Below are positions 1,707 to 34,098 of a stretch of DNA of 64,000 nucleotides, one piece after another. Position numbers and translations under genes: made by a program. Under the pieces are notes generated by a model. The model had not been told where the DNA came from. It did no database searches and saw only the letters and a program-made list of their open reading frames with translations. Where the stretch lies: sequence record MZ475898.1. One strand, written 5' to 3'. Numbering within the stretch: the first letter of the stretch is position 1; each line of letters starts with the position of its first letter.

Positions 1707-2490
1707 GGGTCCATACGGGCTAGTTGAGTCCGATAACCTTGTCCCACGTTGGACGTACCCTATTGTGCATGGTAGAGTTCGTCAGGTAGAAGCGTGGGAA
1801 CTTGATACGCTACCAAACGTTTCCACAGAAGTCCGTATGGTAAACGATATTCATGCAATTCACAGCACCCCCGTAGAGGATTATGATGACACAATCGACC
1901 TCGAAGCAGAAGCCGAAACGTATTCAAAAACTGAATCCCGACTTCTTATCAAACCTAAGCTCAATGAAATCAGAGCCCGTAAAAACCAAAGTAACACTGG
2001 TCCAGAGAACGTCTTCTCTGTAGCTCCTGAAGTTCTTGACCGTACGCTGGACAGCATTGATCAGCACAGCGAATCCTTCCGTGATTATCTGTTGCATCAA
2101 GTGTTCAGTCCAATCTTAGGCTTTGATATAGCGGCGGGTGAAGTCGAAGCAATTGCGCGTGATTGTCTCAAGACCCCTCTTGAGATCGACAGTGAACTCG
2201 TTCCCTATCTCGAACGAATCGGACTTGCTAATATCATAGGAGTGATGTTGGGCAAATCTGAGTCTGTACCAGAAATCGTGCGTGCAGACGTACTCAAAGA
2301 CTGGCTGATTAAGTCATTCGATGATATTCGTTTAGACAATAAAACGAAAGCTAACGGTACGAAGCTGCGTGATCAAATACGCCGCCTGATGCACGGTAAC
2401 GACGAGCTGGTTGCTCAAGGTGCTGGCATTGGTTCTACCCGAGGTTATTCGGAAGCGAGGAAGCAACAGAAAGAAAATGGCAAAGCCTAA
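1693..2490 (+). CDS. hypothetical protein (265 aa), positional candidate for terminase small subunit
   Basis: Long ORF overlapping the terL start; function inferred from position only. Confidence 0.55.
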   Translation: MKKFEGPYGLVESDNLVPRWTYPIVHGRVRQVEAWELDTLPNVSTEVRMVNDIHAIHSTPVEDYDDTIDLEAEAETYSKTESRLLIKPKLNEIRARKNQSNTGPENVFSVAPEVLDRTLDSIDQHSESFRDYLLHQVFSPILGFDIAAGEVEAIARDCLKTPLEIDSELVPYLERIGLANIIGVMLGKSESVPEIVRADVLKDWLIKSFDDIRLDNKTKANGTKLRDQIRRLMHGNDELVAQGAGIGSTRGYSEARKQQKENGKA

Positions 2491-5311
2491 GAAGGGTCCA
2501 GCCTTCCAACTTCGTCCCAAGCGTATAGCTGCATTCGATGCACTGCTTGGCGATGATTTTGAGGAGGCTTCATCTGAGGCGGAAGGGTTAGACTTCCTCT
2601 CAGAAAATAGCGCTAATGCCATAGACTTCCTTGAGAAAGGGGAAGTGAACGTAGTTGACTTGGTGGAGAGTGCGCTAGAGCAGCGTACCCTCGTACCACG
2701 CGACTTGAAGTTCGACGATAGCTCAATGCCGAAAGCAAAGAACTTCTTGGACTGGTGTACTAATCCAAAGTTCCTTAAAGCTGAGCCATATCTTGAGCAG
2801 GCCATGATCGGTCTGCGTTTGTTCGGTGAGATCTGCGTAAGATGTTCACCCAATCTACAATGGATGTATACAGAGAATCATGAGCCGCAGGAGGGTACTG
2901 CCGCTATTGGGAAGCATTTGCATCTTCTCCATAACGGTGTGTGTCCTCACTGCGGCGCTCGTCGTTCTGATATGATTCGTAACAAGGAGATTAACTTCTA
3001 CAACGAGCTGGCAGTGAATGCCGGTCAGCGTTGTGTGATTGCGTCTACGCCTGTAGCGACGAACAACGGTATCATGCCTATCGGTCACATGATGATCGGT
3101 CATGACACTCCTGGCTTCCACAAGCCTCGTCGCAATTTCAGTGCGCACAACGGACGTGAGATCAAAAAGGTTAGTCAAGTCTATGTGTCAAGCGAGAGTC
3201 CGACCAAGGTCATTACACTCGCTAACGGCATTTGGATTGAAGCAACACACGATCACCCTATTCGTACAGAGACGGGCTTTAAGAAGACCGATAAACTCGT
3301 GCGTGGTGAACGTGTTGAAGTAGCTGTCGGCACGAACACGTGGGGCAAGATACAGCGCCCTACGACGATCTACGAAGCTGGATTGTCTACGCGTGAAGAT
3401 GCGTTGCGATACATTGCAGACAGATCGATTCCGTTCGGCGAAAGCAAGCTACAGTACGTCTCAGACGACCCTGATGCGATTCAGATGGTGTGGTCTATTC
3501 TGCTTAACGCGGGATTTGTACCGAGCGTGCTCAGAGGCTCAGAAGGCCGTAGCGTTCTCTACTCTCTGACAGATGAGCCTCAGCGTTGTTCGAAGCACAT
3601 CGAGATCATGTTCGTTGAAGAAGGCACGCCGCAGATAACATACGACTTGCAGATGGAAGGTCTGCCTCAGTTCGTAGCGTCTGGCCTCGTACACCACAAC
3701 AGCGGTAAGTCAGTTGTTGTTGCAATGATCTCTACCTATCTGACGCACAGACTGCTTATGTCGCAGTCGCCTACGGGTATCTTGAGCATCGACAGCACAA
3801 CCGTATTGCACGGTACGTTCGTTGCTCTTACCCAGAAGCAAGCGGCCGATACATTGTGGACTCCCTACTTCAACTACATCATGGGCAGTCCCTGGTTCCA
3901 AGCATACCATGACCTGATTCGTAAACACGAACGGCGCTATGGTATCGAAGTAATGAAGATTCGTGACACGTTCATATTGTACGGTCATCGTAGCTTTGTT
4001 ATTTATCCTGCAGGTCCTGATGGACGTATTCTTCGTGGTCGAACCCGTGTACTAGCGGTAATCGATGAAGTGGCGTATTTTGACAACGACGCCCAATCGA
4101 AGAAAATCAAAGTCAGTGCTAATGCCGTGTACGGCGCTCTCGACCGCTCGCTCGCCACTGTGCGTGCTAAGGAGAAGCGGCAAGTCGAAGCCGGATATGA
4201 TGAGGCGTTTACGGGTTACTTCTGCAACATTAGTAGCCCGGTACATGCCCGCGACAAGATCAATGAACTGATGCGCATGGCAGTTGACTCGAAAACGTTG
4301 CTGGGCATTCATGCTCCTACGTGGAAGATGAACCCAGACATGCCGCGTGATTCAGAGTTCTTGCTCGAAGCGTTCCGTCGTGACCCTGTTGGTGCGGCGC
4401 GTGACTACGGTGCAGAAGCTCCGTTGTCTGCTAACCCGTTCATCACTCAGCCTATCTTTATCGAGCAGGCGATACGTGAGAAGGGTCGTTCGCTGTGCAG
4501 TTACACGCATCATATTCTACGTCACAAAGACGGACAGAGACAGCGTTACGGGTCACTCGTTAAAGCAGTTGAGACAAACAAGAACAGCATCCTCGCAATC
4601 GATGCAGGCTATTCAAACAACAGCTTCTCGCTGGTGACTGGTAGCCGTGACGAAGCAGGGATCATCTCGGTAGACTGCGTTGTGGAGATCATTCCTAAGC
4701 CAGGCATACCTCTCAACTACACGATGATATTCGATGAACTGCTTGTGCCTCTGTGTCGCCTGCGTAACGTTCGCGTAATGCTTGCTGACCAATGGCAGTC
4801 TCTCAAGTTGCTACAAGATGCGAAGATCAAATGTCCTTCAATCGAAGCTGCCGACAAGTACAGCCTCAAGTACGAGGACATGTGGACAGTTAAGACGATG
4901 TTTGAATCTCAGCCATCGCGTATCAGTCTGCCTCGTATGGGCTTTGCTAAGACCATTCAGGAGACGTTGCAGTATAACGGTGACGAGTACCCACACTGCT
5001 TTGAGAACAAGCCTACAGAGCACTTGATAATGCAGCTACAGACTGTGCAAGACACGGGCCGTGGCGTTATCAAGAACACAGGTGCAACAGATGACTTGTG
5101 GCGTGCTATGGCTCTCATGGTATATGGCTTTGAGTGTGGTGAATATGAGGAGTTCTTGTCCACTCCTGCAAAAATCAGCGTTAACCGTGACCCGAATCGT
5201 CTGGGTCGTGTTGCTGGTCGTCTCAACAAAGGCGTTGCAGGGTCTAGTGGTAAGGCAGCTCCTACTCGCGTTCTTGGTAGCGCTGCGACTCGTATGATTG
5301 GTCGCAAATAA
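2477..5311 (+). CDS. terL: terminase large subunit with intein
   Basis: Spliced Walker A AGQR|SGKS, Walker B VIDEVAYF, nuclease motifs ILAIDAG and TDDLW. Start moved to ATG 2477 (MAKPKK). Confidence 0.9.
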   Translation: MAKPKKGPAFQLRPKRIAAFDALLGDDFEEASSEAEGLDFLSENSANAIDFLEKGEVNVVDLVESALEQRTLVPRDLKFDDSSMPKAKNFLDWCTNPKFLKAEPYLEQAMIGLRLFGEICVRCSPNLQWMYTENHEPQEGTAAIGKHLHLLHNGVCPHCGARRSDMIRNKEINFYNELAVNAGQRCVIASTPVATNNGIMPIGHMMIGHDTPGFHKPRRNFSAHNGREIKKVSQVYVSSESPTKVITLANGIWIEATHDHPIRTETGFKKTDKLVRGERVEVAVGTNTWGKIQRPTTIYEAGLSTREDALRYIADRSIPFGESKLQYVSDDPDAIQMVWSILLNAGFVPSVLRGSEGRSVLYSLTDEPQRCSKHIEIMFVEEGTPQITYDLQMEGLPQFVASGLVHHNSGKSVVVAMISTYLTHRLLMSQSPTGILSIDSTTVLHGTFVALTQKQAADTLWTPYFNYIMGSPWFQAYHDLIRKHERRYGIEVMKIRDTFILYGHRSFVIYPAGPDGRILRGRTRVLAVIDEVAYFDNDAQSKKIKVSANAVYGALDRSLATVRAKEKRQVEAGYDEAFTGYFCNISSPVHARDKINELMRMAVDSKTLLGIHAPTWKMNPDMPRDSEFLLEAFRRDPVGAARDYGAEAPLSANPFITQPIFIEQAIREKGRSLCSYTHHILRHKDGQRQRYGSLVKAVETNKNSILAIDAGYSNNSFSLVTGSRDEAGIISVDCVVEIIPKPGIPLNYTMIFDELLVPLCRLRNVRVMLADQWQSLKLLQDAKIKCPSIEAADKYSLKYEDMWTVKTMFESQPSRISLPRMGFAKTIQETLQYNGDEYPHCFENKPTEHLIMQLQTVQDTGRGVIKNTGATDDLWRAMALMVYGFECGEYEEFLSTPAKISVNRDPNRLGRVAGRLNKGVAGSSGKAAPTRVLGSAATRMIGRK
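3032..3700 (+). mobile_element. intein (223 aa) in the TerL Walker A, with only a remnant endonuclease region
   Basis: Starts CVIAST, block B ATHDHP, ends YDLQM...FVASGLVHHN, followed by Ser(+1). Confidence 0.9.
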
Positions 5312-12543: not shown

Positions 12544-13314
12544 ATGAGCAATATCGATACTACAATGCCTAAAGGCAAATGGGAGTTCAACGAGTCAGTT
12601 GCTTGCGTGTTCGATAACATGCTGCAAAACTCCATCCCGTCTTATGCCCGTATGCGTGACCTGACGTACCGTCTTGGTCGTCGCTTCGTAACTCCTGGTT
12701 CAGCTATCGTTGATCTCGGTGCCTCCTTGGGTCGCGCTATCGAACCGTTTGCAAAAGAGTTCGGCAAGTATGACTATCATCATGCTGCTGACGCTCCTGG
12801 CGAAGACTACGAAACAGGCAATCACTACAGCCTGTATGAAGTAGCTCCAGCTATGCGCGAACGTCTGGTGCAGAATGAAGTGCTTCTCTCAGTGAATGCC
12901 AAACTGGAAAGTGAATCGCTGGTAGATACTGACACGTTTATGTTCGACGGTCAGGTGCATTGCTCGTTGATTCTGAGTGTGCTAACTCTCCAGTTCACGC
13001 CGATTGAACATCGTCAACACATTCTGGAAAACGTGTACAACTCACTGCAACCAGGCGGCGCATTCATCCTCGTTGAGAAGGTGTTAGGCGATAACAACTA
13101 TCTCGACAAAATGCTGGTGGACACCTACTACCAGATGAAAGGTGGTAACGGTTACAGCGCCGAGTCGATTGCGACTAAACGTAAGTCACTGGAAGGCGTA
13201 CTCGTTCCTGTTAAAGCAGCGTGGAACGAAGAACTGTTGCGTAAAGCAGGCTTCGGTCAGGTAGAAAGTTTCTATCGCGACCTGAACTTCGCAGGATGGA
13301 TTGCTATTAAGTAA
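12544..13314 (+). CDS. cmoA: CmoA-family carboxy-S-adenosyl-L-methionine synthase
   Basis: Co-linear with E. coli CmoA: WEFNESVACVFDNM, DLGASLG, TLQF, PGGAFILVEK, NGYSAESIATKRKSLEGV (keeps the Arg equivalent to R199), LRKAGF, LNFAGWIAIK. Confidence 0.88.
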   Translation: MSNIDTTMPKGKWEFNESVACVFDNMLQNSIPSYARMRDLTYRLGRRFVTPGSAIVDLGASLGRAIEPFAKEFGKYDYHHAADAPGEDYETGNHYSLYEVAPAMRERLVQNEVLLSVNAKLESESLVDTDTFMFDGQVHCSLILSVLTLQFTPIEHRQHILENVYNSLQPGGAFILVEKVLGDNNYLDKMLVDTYYQMKGGNGYSAESIATKRKSLEGVLVPVKAAWNEELLRKAGFGQVESFYRDLNFAGWIAIK

Positions 13315-13323
13315 GGAAATACT

Positions 13324-14586
13324 ATGAAAGTAAACGGGCGTATCTTAGCTATCGTCCCACACAAGACAATGCAAGACCGTACCAAGTCGGGTGTGGGTTC
13401 GTACATTGATGGACTAGAGGCATACGGCTTCTGCGACTTTATCACGGACGGAGAGAACAGCTCCGTTACGAAAAGTCAGTGGTTCACTTACGGTGATACT
13501 ACTCTCAGTGACGGTTATAAGATAGGGCATATCCAGAGCGAGTTGCTGATTGCACTTGAGCGCTTGCCTTACCGTGCGATTATTTGCAGCACGTATGAGG
13601 CGATTGAAGCCTGCGTGTCTCTGGGACTGCCAAAGATTATGCCCGTTTACTATCGCACGCACAACAGCTTTTTGCTCACACAAGATCTCAAGGGTCTTGG
13701 TGCAGAGAAGATCCACCGTGCGTTGTTGCAAGCACGCGTCACAGGGCTGCGCATCCTTGCTAACTGTGATTCGACTGCGATCAATCTTGCTGAGCGCTAT
13801 AAGACGCCAGCACACGTGGCCTACAACTCGTTCTCGGTGCCTGACTACAACCCACCAGCGCGGCGTTCTCCGCAACTGCTGATTATCTGTCGCTATGAGA
13901 AGGTCAAGCGCACGTTGTTTGCTGCGCGTATTGCTGCTGCATCAGGGTTACCCGTTCGTGTTATGACAGGCAGTGATCGTCAAGTACGCAATTGGGAGAA
14001 AGAGCTGGCTGAGGCGGGTGTCAAAGAATATACGGTCGTCAGTGGCCTTAGTGGTAAACAGAAACTCGAATTTATAGGCGCTTGCACAGTAGCCCTTTCT
14101 ACTGCGAGCGTTGAATCTTTTGCTAACGGTGTGCGTGAGTCTATCCCCTACTGTCCTACCTTTATCGTGCAAACATCCAAGTACGATTGGGCTAAGGACT
14201 ATACGCGCTTCTGTACTGCCGACAAGCATGTTCATATCAGAACTGTTGATCGCGTATCAGACCAAGCCGTAGCCGAAATCGGAAGTGAGATAGCGCAAAC
14301 AGCTACCACACGTTATCTGACAGGGCCGCAGCGTAAACAACTACTGACTGCTTGGGCAAAGCAAGTTGATCGTGGTTGGTCCGACTTTGTTCAGAAGGCT
14401 GTTGTTGACGATGACGGCAAGCCGCTGCGCACCGAGCTGTATCAAGAACTGATCGACAAGTCAGAGATCGATTGGTCACAAACGCCCACGCTGATGCGTA
14501 CTGTAAATGCGTTACATAAATGCCACGCTCGTTTGGGCCTGACATTTGATGGCACTAAAATCAAATATAAGAGGAAGCGCAAATGA
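13324..14586 (+). CDS. GT-B (GT4-like) glycosyltransferase
   Basis: SGVGSY, LLIICRYEKVKR, and STASVESFANGVRESIPYCPTFI matching the S..E.FG....EA..G.PV donor-binding pattern. Confidence 0.75.
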   Translation: MKVNGRILAIVPHKTMQDRTKSGVGSYIDGLEAYGFCDFITDGENSSVTKSQWFTYGDTTLSDGYKIGHIQSELLIALERLPYRAIICSTYEAIEACVSLGLPKIMPVYYRTHNSFLLTQDLKGLGAEKIHRALLQARVTGLRILANCDSTAINLAERYKTPAHVAYNSFSVPDYNPPARRSPQLLIICRYEKVKRTLFAARIAAASGLPVRVMTGSDRQVRNWEKELAEAGVKEYTVVSGLSGKQKLEFIGACTVALSTASVESFANGVRESIPYCPTFIVQTSKYDWAKDYTRFCTADKHVHIRTVDRVSDQAVAEIGSEIAQTATTRYLTGPQRKQLLTAWAKQVDRGWSDFVQKAVVDDDGKPLRTELYQELIDKSEIDWSQTPTLMRTVNALHKCHARLGLTFDGTKIKYKRKRK

Positions 14587-15659
14587 GTGTTATCGGTGAT
14601 ATTTATAACATCCCACAACCGTTCGCAATGTATGTCGGGAATTGTGAGACGCGTGCTCAAGCCAAAGTTGCTGCTGGCACAATCGAGTGGGCGCCAGAGA
14701 AAGTGTGCTGCACCGTAGATGATGGTAACAACCTGTTCCCCAACGTACCTTCAATCAACCCTGCTGACGTGCATAAGACAGATGCAGAAACTTTAGTGAT
14801 TGGCTGTGCACCTTTCGGCGGCCGCATTGACGAGCACATGGACAAAGCTATTCGTAGCGCTATCTATCGTGGACGCAACATTGCTGCTGCTATGCATACG
14901 CGCCTGGCGGATAACCCCGAATACGTTGAGCTGGCCGATCGCTACAACGTCAAGCTGTATGACTTCCGTCATCGTCCTGATGCGTACCCACTAGGTACTG
15001 GTGAGAAGCGTAGCGGTCTGCGTCTGTTAACTGTCGGTACTGATAGCTCCTGCGGCAAGAAGTTTACCACGCTGTCTCTGTATCGTGAACTAAAGCGCAT
15101 CCACGCAGACACTGTGTTTTGCTCTACTGGTCAAACAGGCTTCCTGATTAGCGGTTGCGGTATCAACAACGACACGATTGTTGCTGACTTCCTTGCTGGT
15201 GCTGCTGAATCCCTTTCGCCTGCAGGTCCTGCTGATCGTATCTATCTGATTGAAGGCCAGGGCGCTATCACGCATCCAGCCTACACAGGCGGTAGCATGA
15301 GCTTGATTGCTGGCTCTCAGCCTGATCATCTCATCCTGTGCCACGCATGGAACCGCCAGAATCAGTTGGGCGTTAAGCGTAAGCCTGACCTTGATTTTGA
15401 GATGCGTGCTAACATTGAAGCGGCGCGTATTCACGGTCTCAACCCGACCTACATCGGTATCAGCATTAACTTCTCTGAGTGTGATTTGACACAGGACGAG
15501 CAAGATAAAATCCTGTACCAACTCGCATCAACGTATGAGATTCCCGTGTTCGACCCATCACAGGACACTTCTGTGCTGCGTGACCTCGCTCGTATGTTAG
15601 CAACTAAAGCCAAAGCAAGGAGCCTCGATGGCCAAGCATCCACTGCGCAAGCTGTTTGA
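14583..15659 (+). CDS. DUF1611 / DgcN-like P-loop protein
   Basis: VIGCAPFGG, TVGTDSSCGKKFT, STGQTG, VADFLAGAAE, IEGQGAITHPAY, GSQPDHLILCH. Confidence 0.88.
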   Translation: MSVIGDIYNIPQPFAMYVGNCETRAQAKVAAGTIEWAPEKVCCTVDDGNNLFPNVPSINPADVHKTDAETLVIGCAPFGGRIDEHMDKAIRSAIYRGRNIAAAMHTRLADNPEYVELADRYNVKLYDFRHRPDAYPLGTGEKRSGLRLLTVGTDSSCGKKFTTLSLYRELKRIHADTVFCSTGQTGFLISGCGINNDTIVADFLAGAAESLSPAGPADRIYLIEGQGAITHPAYTGGSMSLIAGSQPDHLILCHAWNRQNQLGVKRKPDLDFEMRANIEAARIHGLNPTYIGISINFSECDLTQDEQDKILYQLASTYEIPVFDPSQDTSVLRDLARMLATKAKARSLDGQASTAQAV

Positions 15660-16503
15660 ACAGCATGTGAAAAAAGAAGTGAAAGCAGACAAGGTAGCTG
15701 TGCTGCTTTCATCTGGCCTCGATGGTTTAGTCAGTGCGTTAGCTGCACACGACCTGGGTAAGAAGGTACATGCCTTCACATTCCAAATGGGTGACAACCC
15801 TAGCTTCGACAGTCGCCACGCACAGATCGTTGCACAAAAGATGGGCTGGGAGTTCACGCTCGTTAAAGTTCCCACCAGCGTGTCTGCTATCGCGTTAGCG
15901 TGGCGCGTGCTTCATTCCAAGTATCGCTGCATCAAGAAGCGTGACTACGAGTGTGCATATCCTATGGTCTATTGCTACAAGGCAATCAAAGACGCTGGGT
16001 ACAAGTATGTGCTAAGCGGGCTGGTGGCCGATGGCTACTTCCTGTATAACCGTAACACGCACATTCAGAAAATCAGCGGCCCTCACTCTGACGCTCAGAA
16101 GTATCATGAGTTCCGTACTCAATACTTTAGTCCGTGGCTTAAACACGGTAAGAAGTCTCTGGGCGTTGACGGGTATAACCCGAGCGGCATGTTGCAGCAT
16201 GAGATGTTGTGCGATAACTTCGGCCTGATTCACGTTAACCCGTGGATGCAGAACAAGGTGTTTGACTACTTCATCAAATACACTTGGCAGGAGTTGAATC
16301 AGCCTAAGCAGAAGATGCCGCTGACCGAAGCATGGGCTGAACATATTGCACTGGTTGGTCATCGCCCACACAGAGGCTATCAGACAGAAGCCAAAGTGCC
16401 TGAATACTTTGAGCATCTGATCGATAGCCCTGAGATTAACTTCAACGGGCGCAAGCGCATCATGGACGTTGCACGCGACTGGTCCAAACGAGAGCCTGAA
16501 TAA
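15628..16503 (+). CDS. asparagine-synthase-type ATP-dependent amide ligase (synthetase domain only)
   Basis: PP-loop LLSSGLDG, VLSGLVADGYF, PWMQNKV, KMPLTEAW, RPHRGYQ; no N-terminal glutaminase domain. Confidence 0.82.
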   Translation: MAKHPLRKLFEQHVKKEVKADKVAVLLSSGLDGLVSALAAHDLGKKVHAFTFQMGDNPSFDSRHAQIVAQKMGWEFTLVKVPTSVSAIALAWRVLHSKYRCIKKRDYECAYPMVYCYKAIKDAGYKYVLSGLVADGYFLYNRNTHIQKISGPHSDAQKYHEFRTQYFSPWLKHGKKSLGVDGYNPSGMLQHEMLCDNFGLIHVNPWMQNKVFDYFIKYTWQELNQPKQKMPLTEAWAEHIALVGHRPHRGYQTEAKVPEYFEHLIDSPEINFNGRKRIMDVARDWSKREPE

Positions 16504-16757
16504 TGCATCCTGTTATCACAGACTTTCTTGGTCCTATCGTTAAGCGGCTGGGCCTATTCACTGCTATATTCGGTTTTGTCGGCGTGCTGCTGTCTGTGAT
16601 CGCAGTGCTTGTGTGCCGCCCAGAAGTCCTTCAATACGAATACGATACTGTAAATAGACTTCGTATTGAGGGTATTGTATTCTTGGGTAAAGGCGTTCTC
16701 GTTTACATCGTAGGCGAGATACTTGAAGGCACGTTCAAGTGGAGAAAAGATGATTAA
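16503..16757 (+). CDS. small membrane protein
   Basis: Two hydrophobic segments; TAATG coupling. Confidence 0.55.
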   Translation: MHPVITDFLGPIVKRLGLFTAIFGFVGVLLSVIAVLVCRPEVLQYEYDTVNRLRIEGIVFLGKGVLVYIVGEILEGTFKWRKDD

Positions 16758-17013
16758 CAAATTCGTGATGAAGAAGACTCCGACCATTGAAGCCTGTCAG
16801 TGGAACGGGGAGAACAAGGAAGAGATTGAAGCCTTCCTTGGCAATAACGGATTCGTTGTTGGGCGTTACGTGCAGATTGGTGTTCTGGATAAATACCAGA
16901 AGCCAACTATTGCTAACGTAAGCGTAGGCAACTATGTGATCAAGCGCGATGATGGTAAGTTCGACGCCATTACTGCGCAAGATCTGTTTGAGAATTATGT
17001 ATTAGCAGATTGA
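16750..17013 (+). CDS. small conserved phage protein (KKP..IEA.QW.G.N...GDY.IK family), sponge candidate
   Basis: KKTPTIEACQWNGENK...GNYVIKRDDGKFDAITAQDLFENY. Confidence 0.65.
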   Translation: MINKFVMKKTPTIEACQWNGENKEEIEAFLGNNGFVVGRYVQIGVLDKYQKPTIANVSVGNYVIKRDDGKFDAITAQDLFENYVLAD

Positions 17014-17020
17014 GGCCATA

Positions 17021-17473
17021 ATGAATCTGTTTTCTATTTTAAAACAGCAAGTGAAGAAATCCCTGACGACCGAAGCAACGCTTGAGCCAGAAGTGCGCAA
17101 ACACTTTGACTGGCGTTTCAGTGTTGACGTCAAAGGTCTGATGTACATTGTAGGCAAGACTGGTGCTAACACCTGCTTCTATCTTGAGCCAGGTCACGTT
17201 GAGCCTACTGCCTGCTATCCTGATGAACTACTTGCGAAGATTGATAGCTGGGGCGCTGCTAAGTATGTGTCCTACGCTGTCTATTTCAAGAAGTTCACCA
17301 GTCCTGTAGCTGAAAACATCAAGACGCTTGAGCAAGCCAAGACAGGCAAGCCTAAAGCGTTTAAGAAAGGCTACTTTATCTGTGGCGTAACACCGAAAGG
17401 TAAGCGCGTCAAACTGTGTCGTCTGCACAACAGCCTAAGCGGTATGCAGTGGGTTGATGTAGACCAGAAGTAA
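17021..17473 (+). CDS. hypothetical protein (150 aa)
   Basis: GAGG RBS. Confidence 0.6.
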   Translation: MNLFSILKQQVKKSLTTEATLEPEVRKHFDWRFSVDVKGLMYIVGKTGANTCFYLEPGHVEPTACYPDELLAKIDSWGAAKYVSYAVYFKKFTSPVAENIKTLEQAKTGKPKAFKKGYFICGVTPKGKRVKLCRLHNSLSGMQWVDVDQK

Positions 17474-19129: not shown

Positions 19130-19531
19130 ATGAGACCTGAAAACATTTCACGCACCTATCGCGTCGGTCAGTCTGACCTGGAGAAAGCACACAACGTCTG
19201 CGGAGAGAACAATGTAACACTCTCAGATGTGGTACGCAGATACATCGAAAGAATCGTACTGACTGAGGGTGAGTTCCTTATGAGCGAGCGTAAGCACGTA
19301 CCTGAGTCTCAACTGAATGTACGCCTGCCCTTTTACATTGCGCACTCCTTTGCATCTGTGTGTAAGTCTCGTGGTACGTTAGCCTCTAAAACCATTCTCA
19401 ACTTTGTCAGGAATATTGCTCTTTCAGGTACTATCCCTGAGGAGTTAAAGTACGCCTCAGACACAGAGTTGCGTGCCTATATTACCTCCGAGCGCTCTCG
19501 CCTCGATGCACTGGAAGCAAAACTTAAATGA
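19130..19531 (+). CDS. tandem ribbon-helix-helix DNA-binding protein
   Basis: Two RHH-like units: RTYRV...TLSDVVRRYIE and QLNVRL...LASKTILNFV. Confidence 0.6.
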   Translation: MRPENISRTYRVGQSDLEKAHNVCGENNVTLSDVVRRYIERIVLTEGEFLMSERKHVPESQLNVRLPFYIAHSFASVCKSRGTLASKTILNFVRNIALSGTIPEELKYASDTELRAYITSERSRLDALEAKLK

Positions 19532-20367
19532 TTCTAACTAGCCCCATTCGCTATCAGGGTAACAAGCGCACTCTGATGCCTCTTATTCTCGAACATGCGC
19601 CTGTGAAGGATTGCGTTCGCATGATAGACGCATTCGGTGGTAGTGGTACTGTTGCGCTCAACATGCCTCACAAGTTTCGCATCTACAATGAACTGAGCAC
19701 GCCTGTGTTTGAGATCGTCCAGCTGCTTGCGCATCAAGACCCGAAGAAAACATTGGGTCAGATTAAGCGTATCGTCAAGCGTTTTTGTCTAACCAATAGC
19801 AGCCAAGACAACTACGACATGTTCCGTGCGTATGTGCAGAAGAAGCCAAGTCCGTTGTTCCATTACATCGCACACAGGCACGCACGCTCTAACATGCTGC
19901 GCTTCAACCAGAAAGGTATCTACAACGTGCCCTTCGGTGAGCGTGGCCTGATTGGTAAGTTCGATCAGCTTGAACAGGAGCTGGTGCAGTTCCACGAGCG
20001 TATGCAGAACACGCACATCACCAACATGCGCTATAACCTGTTGCTCAAGTCTGTGTCAAAGCATATCGGACCGAACACGTTCATTTACTTTGACCCTCCA
20101 TATCTTGCTAGTGGTGCAATGCAGTACGGCAAGTGGACTGAGCACAACGAGCGCAACCTGTTGTCCGTGCTTGAATATCTGAATCGTCAAGGCTGCCCGT
20201 GGATGTTGAGCAACGTTCTCCAACATCGTCATCACACTAACGACCTGCTCAAGCGCTGGCTAAAGAAACACGCAACGACTGTCATCTATCCTGACAAGTC
20301 TTATTCAATGGCCAACTCTCATTCCGATAGTCACAGCACTATCGAGATTCTGGCAATGAACTACTGA
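19528..20367 (+). CDS. dam: Dam-type (D12 class) DNA adenine methyltransferase
   Basis: SPIRYQGNK, IDAFGGSGTV, IYNEL, YFDPPY. Confidence 0.9.
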   Translation: MILTSPIRYQGNKRTLMPLILEHAPVKDCVRMIDAFGGSGTVALNMPHKFRIYNELSTPVFEIVQLLAHQDPKKTLGQIKRIVKRFCLTNSSQDNYDMFRAYVQKKPSPLFHYIAHRHARSNMLRFNQKGIYNVPFGERGLIGKFDQLEQELVQFHERMQNTHITNMRYNLLLKSVSKHIGPNTFIYFDPPYLASGAMQYGKWTEHNERNLLSVLEYLNRQGCPWMLSNVLQHRHHTNDLLKRWLKKHATTVIYPDKSYSMANSHSDSHSTIEILAMNY

Positions 20368-23377: not shown

Positions 23378-23762
23378 TCAGTTACGTGATCAATTGACCG
23401 AAGCTGAATACGCAGAACTTGAGCGCACGACAGCACGGTCAATCATGGAACAAGTGTGGGCACTACGCGGCTGGACGGTTAAGCTCGACTGGTGCAACTA
23501 TATGTGCGACGACGTTGATTGGTTATTCCATGGTAATGAACGTAAAGCACCAGTTGACCACGCTATGCCGAATTCTGGTGTTGGCACTAGCATTGAGCAG
23601 CATCGCCTTAATGTCGTGTTTACTCCTACTGAGGTTAGCGTTACGAACTCACTGGTAGATAGTCCTGTCACTGGTACTGGTATGTCACTGCGCTGTGCTT
23701 ACTGCGCGTGGCTTTTAGAAATCGAAAAACAAAAGGCTGCCAATGCGCTGCAATCTGACTGA
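23364..23762 (+). CDS. hypothetical protein (132 aa)
   Basis: ORF in operon; start uncertain. Confidence 0.5.
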   Translation: MSSVNQLRDQLTEAEYAELERTTARSIMEQVWALRGWTVKLDWCNYMCDDVDWLFHGNERKAPVDHAMPNSGVGTSIEQHRLNVVFTPTEVSVTNSLVDSPVTGTGMSLRCAYCAWLLEIEKQKAANALQSD

Positions 23763-24258
23763 ACTGCCTATCAAACTCGATCAGGCTGAAAACATTATGG
23801 GCAGCGTGTTTGCGCTTGCTGCTGGCTCTAAGTCCAAACGCCGTGCTACTGCTGCAATGCTCATCCATTTCCATGAAGGCTACCCTACGATCATCAGTAG
23901 TGGTGTCAATGGTACTGTGCCTGGTGAAAGCAACGTGTGTGAGAATGAAGACCTCACTCTGACGTTTGCTCACGTCACCCACGCAGAAGCTAACTGCCTC
24001 AATCGCATGGACGAATACAGTCTGTGGCCAGAAGAAGAGGACATCCTGTTTTGTACTGACAGCCCATGTCCTGATTGTTTGCAGCAACTCGAATCTGCTG
24101 GTGTGCAGACCATCGTTTATGCGCGTGAATACAGACTCACAGAGCACCTGGATAAGTCTGCTATTCGCATGTATTGTCTCGATATTGAGAACGTGAGGGC
24201 GTCTTTGCTGAAATCTGTAAATCGTATAGACGAAGTGATTGCAACCACACCTACTTAA
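23743..24258 (+). CDS. dCMP deaminase
   Basis: SSGVNGT, HAEANC, SPCPDC Zn-deaminase motifs. Confidence 0.9.
   Translation: MRCNLTELPIKLDQAENIMGSVFALAAGSKSKRRATAAMLIHFHEGYPTIISSGVNGTVPGESNVCENEDLTLTFAHVTHAEANCLNRMDEYSLWPEEEDILFCTDSPCPDCLQQLESAGVQTIVYAREYRLTEHLDKSAIRMYCLDIENVRASLLKSVNRIDEVIATTPT
24213..24222 (+). promoter_or_regulatory. ATCTGTAAAT motif
   Basis: Exact copy, 54 nt upstream of ATG 24276. Confidence 0.5.
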
Positions 24259-28162: not shown

Positions 28163-29263
28163 ATGACAGGCCCTCTCGATCTCACTAACCCACAGCACTT
28201 CGAACTGTACTCGCTGCACAGCGTTGATGCACAGTATATCAATCTGTGTGACGCACTCCTCACTCAGGGTACGCACGAATCTGACCCAGATCGCACTGCC
28301 GATACGTGGCATACGCTGATCGGTATTGGCTTCCAGTTGTCTAACACCAACATCGCTTTCCCTGCGCTGCTGTCTAAGCGTGTCAACGTCCGTGCAGCTA
28401 TCGATGAATCATGCTGGTTCGCACGCGGTGAAACGAACATCGCAACTCTCGGTTCTAAAATCTGGAACGAGTGGGCAGACGAAGAAGGTGAGAACGGTCC
28501 TATCTACGGCTTCCAGTATCGCAACTGGCCTGACATTAAAGTGTTCAACACTGTCGAAGGTATGATTGAGCAGCACATCCCACCAGCAATGATTGAGCGC
28601 ATCTCGAAAGAGATCAACCGCATGAAGGCGCAGGGCTATATCGAAACTGCGTTGCCTGATGGTCGCGTGCTGTATGAAGGCTATATCGATCAGTACGCTG
28701 ATGCACTACGTCAAATCATGGCGCGTAGTCGTAGCCGCCGCATTCGTGTGCAAGCGTTCAACCCTGGTTACGTTGGTATGCAGAGCCTGCCTCCGTGTCA
28801 CACTGAGTTTGAGTTCAACGTGACCAAAGCTACTGCGTATGAAATTGCGCAGATGGAAGCACGCTCAATGCGTCCTGACGCCGACTCACTGCATATCGTG
28901 GTGACGATGCGCAGCAATGATGCACTTCTCGGGCGCCCCTTCAACATCGTTGGCTACAGCGCCATGCACCAGTTGTTTGCGAAGTGGGCGGGTCTGAACG
29001 TTGGTTCGTTTACTCTGAATGTGACCAATATGCACATGTACGATCACCACCGCGAAGCGTATGCACAACAGCGTGAGCAGTGGCTGGAACTACAGACGCA
29101 GATGCAGACGACAGGCAAACCTGTTGTTTACCCTACCCTCGAAATCACTGACGACATTCTGGGCCTGACGCCAGAAGAGCTGCTGGATAACGTCAACGTC
29201 GATTGGTTCGAGCTGGTGGACTACTCTCCTAAACCTGCTGTTAAAGGACGCGTAACCAAATGA
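28163..29263 (+). CDS. thyA: thymidylate synthase
   Basis: IWNEWAD, GPIYGFQYRNW, LPPCH, MRSNDALLGRPFN, HMYDHH. Confidence 0.93.
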   Translation: MTGPLDLTNPQHFELYSLHSVDAQYINLCDALLTQGTHESDPDRTADTWHTLIGIGFQLSNTNIAFPALLSKRVNVRAAIDESCWFARGETNIATLGSKIWNEWADEEGENGPIYGFQYRNWPDIKVFNTVEGMIEQHIPPAMIERISKEINRMKAQGYIETALPDGRVLYEGYIDQYADALRQIMARSRSRRIRVQAFNPGYVGMQSLPPCHTEFEFNVTKATAYEIAQMEARSMRPDADSLHIVVTMRSNDALLGRPFNIVGYSAMHQLFAKWAGLNVGSFTLNVTNMHMYDHHREAYAQQREQWLELQTQMQTTGKPVVYPTLEITDDILGLTPEELLDNVNVDWFELVDYSPKPAVKGRVTK

Positions 29264-31262: not shown

Positions 31263-31961
31263 ATGGCAAAAATTGCTAAAGCAAAGGAAGGGAAAAAGAA
31301 AAGCAACCCTATGTTGATTGACCTGAAAAAGTTCAAGTCAGTTAAACAGCTTAAGGGTGCGAAGTACAACCCTCGTTTCATTACAGACAGCCGACTGAGA
31401 GCGCTCGAAGGTTCTTTGGGCAGCTTCGGTGATTTGTCTGGCGTGGTGTTCAACAACAGCGTAGACAGTGGCGTATTGATCTCAGGCCACCAGCGTCTCA
31501 AGTCGATTGAGAAGTGGGACTCGCGCATTGAGATTCAACAAACGTCTGACAAGTACGGCACGGTAGCGTTGGGTTATATCCATGCTACCAGCGCCAAAGG
31601 TAAAACGATCAGCATCCCACTGCGTATCGTTAACTGGTCAGATAAGAAAGTGGAGTTTGCTGCTAACATTGCTGCGAATGCCCACGGCGGTGAGTTCGAT
31701 AACAAAAAGCTCGCGTCTCTTGTTGAGAAGCTGGACCTGACTACAATCAAGCCAGCTCTTATCGGGCTTGACCCGTTAGAGATTCGCGGCCTGCAACAGA
31801 CGCTGAGCAAACAAGCTATCGTCGAGCAGGAAAAGCGTGTTGGTAAAACAACAGGCAAAATGAACGGCAGTACTGGCGAGTTCAAAGAGTACACGACTGA
31901 TGAAGTTGGTACTGCGCTGACCTGCACCTGCCCACGTTGTGGCTTTAAGTTCGAGGGATAA
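31263..31961 (+). CDS. ParB/Srx-like N-terminal domain protein with C-terminal Zn-ribbon
   Basis: YNPRFIT, SLGSFG, ISGHQRL, ANIAAN..GGEFD, CTCPRCGFKF. Confidence 0.85.
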   Translation: MAKIAKAKEGKKKSNPMLIDLKKFKSVKQLKGAKYNPRFITDSRLRALEGSLGSFGDLSGVVFNNSVDSGVLISGHQRLKSIEKWDSRIEIQQTSDKYGTVALGYIHATSAKGKTISIPLRIVNWSDKKVEFAANIAANAHGGEFDNKKLASLVEKLDLTTIKPALIGLDPLEIRGLQQTLSKQAIVEQEKRVGKTTGKMNGSTGEFKEYTTDEVGTALTCTCPRCGFKFEG

Positions 31962-31962
31962 C

Positions 31963-34098
31963 ATGATCATCAAGCCGCCTACAATGAAAGAGATTAATAA
32001 GCTGCCCAAGCCTTGGTCAGGTATGAGTTTCTTTGCAGGTTGCGGTGGTTCATCTACCGGTCACAAGATGGCCGGTATTAACATCCTACTGAGCAACGAG
32101 TTCGTGGACGCGGCTCGTGAATCGTATGAAGCGAACCATCCAACAACCAAAGTGTTGCCCCACGATATTCGTCGTCTTGACCCGAAAAAGCTGCTTAGCT
32201 ATTGCGGCCTGAGTCAGGGCGAACTGGACTTGCTCGACGGCAGTCCTCCGTGCTTCACCGAAGACACGTTCATTCATACCGACACTGGTATGAAGTTCAT
32301 CACTGATATGCGCATCGGTGACTTCGCTATGACCTCTGTTGGTAAGTATCATCCAGTGTATGACACGATGGTACGTCCGTATGACGGTCAGATGCACAGA
32401 ATTGAAACGCTGCTTGGTCAGAACAATGCAACGCCTGAACATCCGTTCTTTGTTCGTCGTCAGAATGAAGAAACTGGCGGGTACAGTGCGCCGTTCTGGT
32501 GTGACGCTAAAGATGTGCAGGAAGGTGACCTGTTAGGTACGCCTCGTGTTACGCCTGATATGGGCGAAGCACACACGCATGAGATTATCTCGTCGTTGAC
32601 TGCGCAGCTTGTGCGTTGGATTGCATTGCCTGAGTTCTGGTGGCTGATTGGTCACTGGTGCAATCGCGGTGCAATCGATAAGATTCGTGGTGTCGATGTT
32701 ATTCAATTCACCTCGATGACAGCGATGGAAAACTCGCTGGTGGAACAAGCGTTCGACGTGCTCAAGTTAAGCAGCATCAACAGCGCTTCGTCCGACATGG
32801 GCGTTCATCGTAAGACCGTTCGTGTTGTTATGGACACAGACCTGTTGCTGTTCTTGCGTATGTTTATCGCGCAGGGCAAGAAGTCTATGTCCCGCCGTCT
32901 GCCTGGCATGATCTTCCATCTGGCTAAAGAGCTGAAACAGCAATTCATTCTCGGCTATCTGGGTCGTGATTACGTCACAGCAATGGGCGTTGGTCATGCG
33001 TTAGAGGCTGACTCAAAGCGCTTCCTAGTTGAGATGAATTACCTGTGCTGCTCTGCGTTCAACAGACCGCTGTTCGATGCAATGTTGTTCACTGACTTGC
33101 ATTACGGTAGTCCGATGTTACCACCGAGTCGCTTCATTACCAAAGAGCACATCGGCTTCCTGTTCTTGCAAGAAGAGGTTAATTTCTTCTTTGAGTTCGA
33201 GCCGGAAGACCCGCATCTGTGGGTTGAAGTGATTGAGAACTTTACGCATCATGAAACGTGCAACGTCTATAACTTCTCAGTCAGTGTTGATGAGACGTAT
33301 GTTGCTAACGGCATGGTCGTGCATAACTGCAAAGGGTTCTCGACTGCTGGCGTGAAAGAAGACGGCTGGGGCAAAGAGGTTAAGTACAGCGGCAACAAGT
33401 ATCAGCAAGTCGATGACCTGTTCGATCAGTATTGCCGTATGCTCAAGCACATGCAGCCTAAAACGTTCACTGCGGAAAACGTTAGTGGCCTCGTTAAAGG
33501 TGCGTCGAAGGGTTACTTCATTGAAATCATGAAGACCTTTGATCAGCTGGGCTACTATGTGCGAGCGCCGTTGCTTAATGCTGCGTGGCTTGGTGTGCCT
33601 CAGTCTCGTGAGCGTATCATCTTTATGGGTGTGCGCAAAGACGTGGCGAAAGCACTCGGCTATAAAACTGCGTTGACTGCTGTGCCTGATGTAACACCTC
33701 AATCAAGCATGGCGTTCCTTGCAGATGCATTGCCGAACATTCGTCGCTATAAAGGTACGGAGCGTGACATTATCAAGTATCTGCCTGCTGTTAACGGCCC
33801 GATGCCTACGATTACCGCTGCTGATGCTATCGCATACGAAACAGCACGCTTCTCCTCTGCTGGCTTCATTGAAGACGACAAAGGGCACAGACGCAAGCTG
33901 ACGATTGACGAACTCAAAGTTGTGTCAGGCATGCCTAGTGATTACGTGCTCACAGGTAAGTTTGAAGAACAATGGGAACGTCTCGGTCGTGTGTGCGTAC
34001 CTGCAATGACGTGTGCTGCGGCAAGCGCGTTGATACGCCATGTGCTTGAGCCTTACGCAAAGCTGCGTAAAAAGAAACCTGGGGATCGTTTTCGTTAA
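31963..34098 (+). CDS. C5-cytosine methyltransferase homolog with intein; predicted carboxymethyltransferase (CmoX-like)
   Basis: Motif I FFAGCGG, IV DGSPP|CKGFS, VI AENVSGL, VIII PQSRER; motif X reads ERLGRVCVP (Arg where Asn is normal). Confidence 0.88.
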   Translation: MIIKPPTMKEINKLPKPWSGMSFFAGCGGSSTGHKMAGINILLSNEFVDAARESYEANHPTTKVLPHDIRRLDPKKLLSYCGLSQGELDLLDGSPPCFTEDTFIHTDTGMKFITDMRIGDFAMTSVGKYHPVYDTMVRPYDGQMHRIETLLGQNNATPEHPFFVRRQNEETGGYSAPFWCDAKDVQEGDLLGTPRVTPDMGEAHTHEIISSLTAQLVRWIALPEFWWLIGHWCNRGAIDKIRGVDVIQFTSMTAMENSLVEQAFDVLKLSSINSASSDMGVHRKTVRVVMDTDLLLFLRMFIAQGKKSMSRRLPGMIFHLAKELKQQFILGYLGRDYVTAMGVGHALEADSKRFLVEMNYLCCSAFNRPLFDAMLFTDLHYGSPMLPPSRFITKEHIGFLFLQEEVNFFFEFEPEDPHLWVEVIENFTHHETCNVYNFSVSVDETYVANGMVVHNCKGFSTAGVKEDGWGKEVKYSGNKYQQVDDLFDQYCRMLKHMQPKTFTAENVSGLVKGASKGYFIEIMKTFDQLGYYVRAPLLNAAWLGVPQSRERIIFMGVRKDVAKALGYKTALTAVPDVTPQSSMAFLADALPNIRRYKGTERDIIKYLPAVNGPMPTITAADAIAYETARFSSAGFIEDDKGHRRKLTIDELKVVSGMPSDYVLTGKFEEQWERLGRVCVPAMTCAAASALIRHVLEPYAKLRKKKPGDRFR
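32251..33327 (+). mobile_element. intein (359 aa) with degenerate LAGLIDADG endonuclease
   Basis: Starts CFTEDT, block B ATPEHPF, ends VYNFSV...YVANGMVVHN, followed by Cys(+1), the catalytic Cys. Confidence 0.92.

Follow-up and report, generated by a model that had tools for sequence, protein, structure and literature searches.

A probable CmoX-type DNA cytosine C5-carboxymethyltransferase, with an intein at its catalytic cysteine, encoded by Erwinia jumbo phage pEa_SNUABM_25

What does a phage homologue of DNA cytosine methyltransferases do when the asparagine of its motif X has become an arginine? This question is raised by the gene at positions 31963–34098 of a 64,000-nucleotide stretch of DNA (hereafter, the window), which comprises bases 1–64000 of the 263-kb genome of the Erwinia amylovora jumbo phage pEa_SNUABM_25 (MZ475898.1). 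An earlier note on this DNA had proposed that the gene encodes a natural carboxymethyltransferase, which receives its cofactor from a CmoA enzyme encoded elsewhere in the window. The first natural DNA cytosine C5-carboxymethyltransferase to be described, in December 2025, was SpCmoX of Synechococcus phage S-B43 (Yang et al., Nat Commun 2025, PMC12783734). On the strength of sequence homology, equivalent residues, conservation, gene content, and a distribution in which the loci occur or are missing together, we consider it probable that 31963–34098 encodes the precursor of a CmoX-type DNA cytosine C5-carboxymethyltransferase that depends on carboxy-S-adenosylmethionine (Cx-SAM), and we infer its splicing, cofactor, target motif, product, and role from the same evidence. 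The gene, designated here “cmoX,” and its parts are as follows.

31963..34098, plus strand: cmoX precursor, 711 amino acids (aa), 80.3 kDa, with a cytosine C5-methyltransferase (C5-MTase) fold and an intein
31963..32250, plus strand: N-extein, aa 1–96, with motif I and the adenine/ribose contacts, and SPP at its end
32251..33327, plus strand: class-1 intein, aa 97–455, 359 aa, 41.2 kDa, whose middle domain has a LAGLIDADG fold
33328..34095, plus strand: C-extein, aa 456–711, with the catalytic Cys456, ENV, QSRER, the target-recognition region, and motifs IX and X
33988..33990, plus strand: CGT codon of Arg676, equivalent to SpCmoX Arg350, M.HhaI Asn304, and M.MpeI Asn374

A Shine-Dalgarno-like sequence (GAGGG) lies 5′ of the ATG at 31963, and the stop codon of cmoX ends at 34098. 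Because homologues share the N-terminus MIIKPP, ATG 31963 was accepted as the start, and an alternative GTG start at 31939 was ruled out. A Pfam search with the product returned PF00145 in two pieces (E 6e-38), together with Intein_splicing and Hint_2. The motifs that the earlier note had called canonical were all located in the open reading frame (ORF), namely motif I (FAGCGG, aa 24–29), motif VI (AENV, aa 504–507), motif VIII (QSRER, aa 547–551), and motif IV (GSPP/C, aa 93–96 plus Cys456), which is split by the intein that the note had presupposed. In other words, the precursor reads …DLLDGSPP/CFTEDT…VVHN/CKGFSTAG…, with the intein inserted between SPP and the catalytic cysteine, directly before the latter. 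Residues Cys456, Glu505, Arg549, and Arg551 were invariant in 86 aligned sequences.

When all PDB sequences were searched with phmmer, the top match was 8YF3 (E 1.7e-54), which is SpCmoX with Cx-SAM (PMC12783734). The methyltransferases M.HaeIII (1e-16) and M.HhaI (approximately 2e-7) followed, and 8YF3 outranked M.HaeIII/M.HhaI by an E-value margin of roughly 38 orders of magnitude. An AlphaFold2 (AF2) model built on the precursor, with the intein included, had a mean pLDDT of 80.6, and 8YF3 was also the top match of this model in Foldseek (target-normalised TM-score 0.78), with an alignment spanning the insert. The N-extein aligned with residues 20–97 of SpCmoX over 78 residues without gaps (55% identity) and ended one residue before the position of the SpCmoX catalytic Cys98, which aligned with Cys456. 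In the same alignment, Phe24, Glu46, Phe47, and Asp68 corresponded to the SpCmoX adenine/ribose contacts Phe25, Glu47, Phe48, and Asp69. The SPPC sequence by which the family is recognized in PMC12783734 would be formed after the predicted splicing from SPP (aa 94–96) and Cys456; in the precursor, SPP is followed by Cys97.

Motif X of the cmoX product reads LGRVCVP (aa 674–680), with Gly-Arg at aa 675–676 in place of the Gly-Asn of canonical C5-MTases that depend on S-adenosylmethionine (SAM). The arginine codon is at 33988–33990, where the earlier note had placed it. In an HMMER alignment, Arg676 stood opposite the Asn of GNAVP in M.HaeIII, and in both HMMER and BLASTP alignments, it stood opposite SpCmoX Arg350 within an ungapped block of 55 residues. 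In SpCmoX, Arg350 stands where M.HhaI has Asn304 and is in contact with the carboxymethyl group of the cofactor; the wild-type enzyme takes Cx-SAM only, and the R350N mutant takes neither Cx-SAM nor SAM (PMC12783734). The engineering precedent cited in the note, M.MpeI N374K, is confirmed in PMC12783734 and PMC13288465, and the second one, “Dcm N436K,” was not found by a text search of PMC13288465, the sole paper searched for that term. The best PDB match, the equivalence of Arg676 and Arg350, and the partner genes described below thus support a carboxymethyltransferase reading computationally.

To place Arg676 among its relatives, we used the best 120 matches to the C-extein in a collection of 5.8 billion proteins. 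Arg occupied this position (QQWERLGR) in 117 of these 120 closest homologues and Asn in the other 3. On the phylogenetic tree, the three Asn homologues (P0064, P0074, and P0110) formed one clade nested among Arg sequences, which points to a single reversion to Asn, and the cmoX product grouped with two intein-free metagenomic sequences (P0001 and P0002), near Pseudomonas phage PaBG. The prevalence of Arg together with the lone Asn clade indicates that Arg is a signature of the clade and no chance substitution. The three Asn sequences are metagenomic and look like a natural reversion.

The earlier note had also placed a CmoA gene 19 kb upstream, and a cmoA homologue was found 18.6 kb upstream of cmoX in the window. 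This gene, the other partner genes, and a conserved gene near them are as follows.

12544..13314, plus strand: CmoA homologue, presumed Cx-SAM synthase, 256 aa (TIGR00740, E 3.4e-40)
15628..16503, plus strand: CmoY-like ATP-dependent amide ligase of the Asn-synthase C-domain type, 291 aa (PF00733, E 1.7e-13)
17021..17473, plus strand: conserved 150-aa protein without a family match
31263..31961, plus strand: ParB-like protein, 232 aa (phrog_620 in PHROGs, E 2.3e-31)

CmoA was the best-scoring family for the product of 12544–13314. It shared 30% identity with Escherichia coli CmoA over its full length (E 4e-34) and 28% with the assayed SpCmoA (E 4e-26), and its best PDB match was 4GEK, the E. 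coli CmoA (E 2.6e-28). Its homology to CmoA is therefore clear from the sequence, and its equivalence is presumed. In S-B43, CmoA supplies Cx-SAM, and the ligase CmoY then adds glycine to the carboxymethylated base (PMC12783734). The CmoY-like ligase of pEa_SNUABM_25 shared 33% identity with the assayed SpCmoY over 275 residues, that is, over the full length (E 3e-50).

The proposal that the pathway is split over two loci was borne out: the ParB, CmoX, CmoA, and ligase genes form one contiguous cluster in PaBG and Streptomyces phage TurkishDelight, whereas the cmoX and cmoA loci are approximately 19 kb apart in the Erwinia and Dickeya phages. CmoA and the CmoX C-extein each matched 48 Erwinia and 2 Dickeya records. 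The Dickeya phages JA11, JA13, JA29, and JA33, which were reached by a search with the portal protein (a DNA-level search gave none), have neither locus, although their portal protein is 72–73% identical and lies at the same map position. Consistent with this, the genes reported as common to AD1 and Y3 and missing from JA11 include a methyltransferase (CmoA), an Asn synthase, a cytosine methyltransferase, and a “repressor” (ParB-like) (PMC6143709, Table 5). The two loci are thus coupled in their distribution, being jointly present or jointly absent in this phage lineage.

These observations bear on one alternative, that the gene encodes an ordinary SAM-dependent, Dcm-like C5-methyltransferase making 5-methylcytosine, in which the Arg is tolerated and the phage uses its CmoA for something else. 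In its favor, the protein has the fold and the full set of catalytic motifs of C5-MTases, databases label relatives as DNA-cytosine methyltransferases, and the nested clade that reverted to Asn demonstrates that the position can change. Nevertheless, wild-type SpCmoX, which has the same Arg, refuses SAM, and its R350N mutant uses neither SAM nor Cx-SAM (PMC12783734), while the Arg is kept in nearly all of the closest homologues. Moreover, Arg and CmoA occur together in each CmoA-encoding phage that was checked (pEa_SNUABM_25, S-B43, PaBG, and TurkishDelight). A role of CmoA in tRNA modification would call for a phage CmoB, and among 50,697 phage records, CmoB gave only one match, a 3.4-kb Salmonella record that looks like host DNA, and none in Erwinia or Dickeya phages. 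We therefore regard the ordinary methyltransferase as very unlikely.

Other phages show further combinations at this position. Aphanizomenon phage CL131 has Asn in motif X and no CmoA. The Flavobacterium phage Fpv5 group (approximately 32 records) has Met at the motif X position and no CmoA. Moraxella phage Mcat8 has Arg, and no Moraxella record is among the CmoA matches listed; its CmoX homologue would presumably depend on the host CmoA.

The ParB-like gene lies directly upstream of cmoX, its TAA stop codon (31959–31961) ending 1 nucleotide before the cmoX ATG. Its product is 44% identical to the ParB-like protein of PaBG, which is likewise encoded directly 5′ of CmoX, and ParBc genes are also described as neighbors of CmoX in PMC12783734. 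The ORF had no Pfam or NCBIfam match, and only phrog_620 and a weak match to an MTase N-domain in PADLOC were obtained. The conserved 150-aa protein has a homologue in PaBG (PaBG_00179, 33% identity), encoded between CmoA and the Asn-synthase-like ligase, and its distribution among phages is that of CmoA and CmoX (53 records); judging from this gene context, it may be an accessory component, a suggestion that we make with low confidence.

In the GenBank record MZ475898.1, both cmoX and the ParB-like gene are labelled “hypothetical protein.” The close relatives of pEa_SNUABM_25 are phages of Alexandravirus, Sasquatchvirus, and Yoloswagvirus and Dickeya phage AD1, and in relatives, cmoX is labelled “DNA-cytosine methyltransferase” and the upstream gene “ParB-like partition protein” or “transcriptional repressor.” The earlier note had expected annotation from the neighborhood to miss the enzyme as an ordinary methyltransferase; in the survey of PMC12783734, CmoA was sought anywhere on the same contig, so that a split locus would not necessarily escape it.

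Between cmoA and two conserved small genes (16750–17013 and 17021–17473) lies a variable segment. In the window, it contains two genes, inside the cmoA-cmoY operon, in addition to that of the CmoY-like ligase.

13324..14586, plus strand: GT-B/GT4-like glycosyltransferase homologue, 420 aa, inside the cmoA-cmoY operon
14583..15659, plus strand: DgcN-like/DUF1611 protein, 358 aa (PF07755, E 7.5e-47; PF17396)

The 420-aa protein had no direct Pfam match, but the GT4 domains PF00534 and PF13439 are present in distant homologues. Its AF2 model, a confident one (pTM 0.82), has a GT-B fold and matched the GT4 enzymes BshA, MshA, and GlgM, as well as SenB, in Foldseek. The gene is absent from Y3, AD1, and pEa_35. 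The DgcN-like protein matched NF041892 DgcN (E 2.9e-85, below the cut-off) and PDB 7XRJ (E 3.6e-50), and a literature search for DgcN/DUF1611 returned unrelated papers only. Sister phages whose CmoA is 70–83% identical have at least five cassette types and three lineages of Asn-synthase-like ligases; the genes that follow cmoA are, for example, as follows.

pEa_35 and pEa_30: PaBG-like ligase alone
Y3 and Yoloswag: ligase of a third lineage and a 2OG-Fe(II) oxygenase
AD1 and Alexandra: DgcN-like/DUF1611 protein, then SpCmoY-like ligase
pEa_SNUABM_25: 420-aa GT4-like protein, then DgcN-like protein, then SpCmoY-like ligase
pEa_32: cassette as in pEa_SNUABM_25 plus an alanine-racemase-like gene (PF01168)

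The variation of these accessory genes suggests, from gene content only, that the final base differs between sister phages, and the pattern fits an arms race over decoration chemistry. Tentatively, the end product in pEa_SNUABM_25 may not be 5-glycylcarboxymethylcytosine and may instead be a more elaborate, hitherto undescribed base, such as an amide of 5-carboxymethylcytosine (5cxmC) that is further acylated or glycosylated or carries a D-amino acid, built by a swappable cassette; we regard this as possible rather than likely. Erwinia, Dickeya, inteins, jumbo phages, and DUF1611 are nowhere mentioned in PMC12783734 and its supplements, and the sections of that paper that were consulted do not mention the cassette genes other than DUF1611.

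In another alternative, the enzyme is carboxymethyltransferase-like with a different donor or acceptor, using another SAM analogue or both SAM and Cx-SAM, or acting on a substrate other than double-stranded phage DNA. In its favor, the target-recognition region is unlike that of SpCmoX, the cassette varies between sister phages, and a natural methyltransferase, M.MedI, is reported in the abstract of PMC12015181 to carboxymethylate at CG sites. Against it, the residues of the cofactor pocket match SpCmoX one for one, and no cofactor-making gene other than CmoA is conserved with cmoX. It appears highly unlikely to us.

The intein interrupts the enzyme at a position where its removal would be indispensable. 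Residues Cys97, Thr157 to His160, His454-Asn455, and Cys456 were invariant in 21 aligned precursors, as expected of a class-1 intein, and Cys1, TPEH (block B), DETYVAN, and VVHN with Cys+1 were unchanged across inteins down to 33% identity. The insert resembles the LAGLIDADG-containing inteins TliVMA and PI-SceI (Foldseek), with which the intein shares Cys1, TxxH, HN, Cys+1, and the insertion of a LAGLIDADG-fold domain into a Hint fold; it differs from them in having CmoX as its host protein and in LAGLIDADG motifs whose expected acidic residues are either absent or variable. In the first LAGLIDADG-like motif (WLIGHWCNRG), there is no acidic residue at the expected place, and in the second (ILGYLGRDY), the Asp is lost in more distant relatives; Pfam LAGLIDADG_3 did not match the precursor. 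Because the acidic pair is not conserved, endonuclease or homing activity is doubtful.

Homologous inteins with 33–99% identity were found only in CmoX-like proteins of approximately 700 aa and at the same site, and the intein-bearing allele is kept in approximately 50 isolates of three phage genera. More distant inteins, at 22% identity, were found mostly in thymidylate synthases, the exceptions being one in a different C5-methylase and one in a protein of an unrelated kind. Close relatives without the intein exist, P0002 among them, which is encoded on a contig with Dam, dCMP deaminase, and ThyA genes in the same order as in the window. On a 20-kb Logan contig (SRR10492797) with this gene order, the C-extein of an intein-free CmoX is 70% identical. 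An unoccupied allele of this kind is what a homing intein would lead one to expect. In the literature searched, an intein was nowhere described for the CmoX enzyme family, and PADLOC gave no defense-system match for the intein, GT4-like, DgcN-like, or CmoY-like proteins. Sitting at the catalytic Cys, the intein may control at what time after infection the enzyme gains activity.

In comparison with Y3, the ratio of nonsynonymous to synonymous substitution rates (dN/dS), which is approximate because dS is near saturation, was 0.11–0.13 for the exteins and 0.19 for the intein overall (0.11 for the N-terminal splicing part and 0.23 for the middle domain). The intein as a decaying relic was ruled out by these values and the invariant splicing residues. 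That the gene itself is dead, as a relic locus carried by an intein that splices poorly or not at all, is the least probable explanation and scarcely credible, since the insertion exactly at the catalytic Cys (where a failure of splicing equals a loss of activity), the degenerate-looking LAGLIDADG motifs, and a depletion of 6-bp palindromes of the kind expected from exposure to restriction are set against strong purifying selection on both exteins, splicing residues that are invariant even across inteins 33–40% identical, and the maintenance of the intein allele across the isolates and genera above.

For the carboxymethyltransferase, the following mechanism can be proposed. The class-1 intein would excise itself with Cys97 and Cys456 as nucleophiles and cyclization of Asn455, and splicing would join SPP to Cys456, giving the SPPC catalytic loop of a 39-kDa enzyme. 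The unspliced precursor should be inactive because 359 residues part the catalytic Cys from Pro-Pro, and since Cys456 would be needed as a nucleophile in splicing before it can be one in catalysis, activity is expected only after splicing. The spliced enzyme would flip out the target cytosine, Cys456 would attack C6, and C5 would receive the carboxymethyl group from Cx-SAM, with Arg676, in place of the motif X Asn of methyltransferases, pairing with the cofactor carboxylate. Cx-SAM would be made from prephenate and SAM by the phage CmoA homologue and probably by the host CmoA too. The resulting 5cxmC might then be used as a handle and amidated by the CmoY-like ligase, the GT4-like and DgcN-like proteins of pEa_SNUABM_25 may modify the adduct or build on it, and the modified DNA would be predicted to resist host restriction.

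Several observations weigh against this assignment, in part or as a whole. Splicing, predicted from conserved residues only, is assumed, and the junctions of the catalytic loop in the AF2 model (residues 94–101 and 456–471) had pLDDT values below 50. The target-recognition region aligned poorly with that of SpCmoX, and its GpC specificity is therefore not transferable. The CmoA homologue scored 138.2 bits, short of the TIGR00740 equivalog cut-off of 193.3. In the literature searched, no report of DNA modification was found for Y3, AD1, Alexandra, or PaBG. Furthermore, the window has far fewer 6-bp palindromes than a Markov model predicts (observed vs. expected: AAGCTT, 0 vs. 20; CTGCAG, 4 vs. 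35; CAGCTG, 8 vs. 34), which suggests that the DNA is not fully protected from restriction.

The most depleted 4-mers in the window were CCGG and CTAG (observed/expected approximately 0.4). If a GpC-directed modification were protective, palindromes with GpC should be less depleted than others; this did not hold, the median observed/expected ratio being 0.35 for these palindromes and 0.64 for those without GpC.

Compared with known systems, the enzyme of pEa_SNUABM_25 shares with SpCmoX the C5-MTase fold, SPPC, ENV, QxRxR, the motif X Arg, and the same cofactor contacts, and the S-B43 genome likewise encodes CmoA and an Asn-synthase-like CmoY ligase. It differs in sequence identity (only 55% in the N-extein and 31% in the C-extein), in a different and shorter target-recognition region, and in gene arrangement: in S-B43, cmoX adjoins cmoA and cmoY, while the loci are 19 kb apart in pEa_SNUABM_25. 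Only the latter has the 359-aa intein, the ParB-like gene directly upstream, and the GT4-like and DgcN-like genes in the cmoA-cmoY operon. Outside the Erwinia/Dickeya/Yersinia group, no isolate is closer than the Pseudomonas jumbo phage PaBG, whose C-extein, with the motif X Arg, shares 48% identity and whose CmoA shares 41%. Its genes PaBG_00176–00180 (ParB-like, C5-MTase, CmoA, hypothetical protein, and Asn synthase) are contiguous, without an intein and without GT4-like or DgcN-like genes, and its ligase belongs to another lineage (24% identity). In the engineered M.MpeI N374K and M.CviPI variants of the Kohli laboratory (PMC13288465), a basic motif X residue also leads to the use of Cx-SAM and to 5cxmC; these are Lys point mutants made in the laboratory with CpG or GpC specificity, whereas here a natural Arg is fixed in a large clade. 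M.HhaI, M.HaeIII, and Dcm share the fold, motifs I, IV, VI, and VIII, and covalent Cys-C6 catalysis, but have Asn in motif X where pEa_SNUABM_25 has Arg, and are far weaker matches (E 1e-16 to 1e-7, as against 1e-54 for CmoX).

Because the CmoX family and its Arg signature have been published, with 5,615 candidates (PMC12783734), the idea itself is not new. Three features go beyond that paper: an intein conserved at the catalytic Cys, the separation of the pathway into two loci, and a hypervariable cassette beside cmoA. The assignment would extend natural DNA carboxymethylation from a cyanophage to approximately 50 sequenced isolates of Erwinia, Dickeya, and Yersinia jumbo phages, whose genes are now labelled “hypothetical protein,” “DNA-cytosine methyltransferase,” or “tRNA methyltransferase.” These phages can be cultivated on tractable hosts, and several are in biocontrol cocktails against fire blight; the chemistry of phage DNA bears on host range, on sequencing and cloning, and on how restriction is evaded. 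Thanks to the variable cassette, closely related phages form a natural set in which new bases derived from 5cxmC can be sought together with the enzymes responsible, the intein is a simple test case of a modification enzyme wholly dependent on protein splicing, and the Asn-type homologues P0064, P0074, and P0110 would be useful for cofactor-switching tests.

A few further features of the window touch on these subjects. The thymidylate synthase homologue at 28163–29263 has 366 aa, approximately 80 residues beyond the coverage of the Pfam model, and thymidylate synthases are also where distant relatives of the CmoX intein reside; a dCMP-deaminase-like gene (23743–24258) and a Dam-family adenine methyltransferase gene (19528–20367) are found near it. 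A second intein lies in the 966-aa ORF at 2411–5311, in which aa 208–286 match an intein N-terminal splicing region (TIGR01445). The AD1 counterpart of this ORF is annotated as the large terminase subunit, and terminase inteins in this phage group were noted in the PaBG paper.

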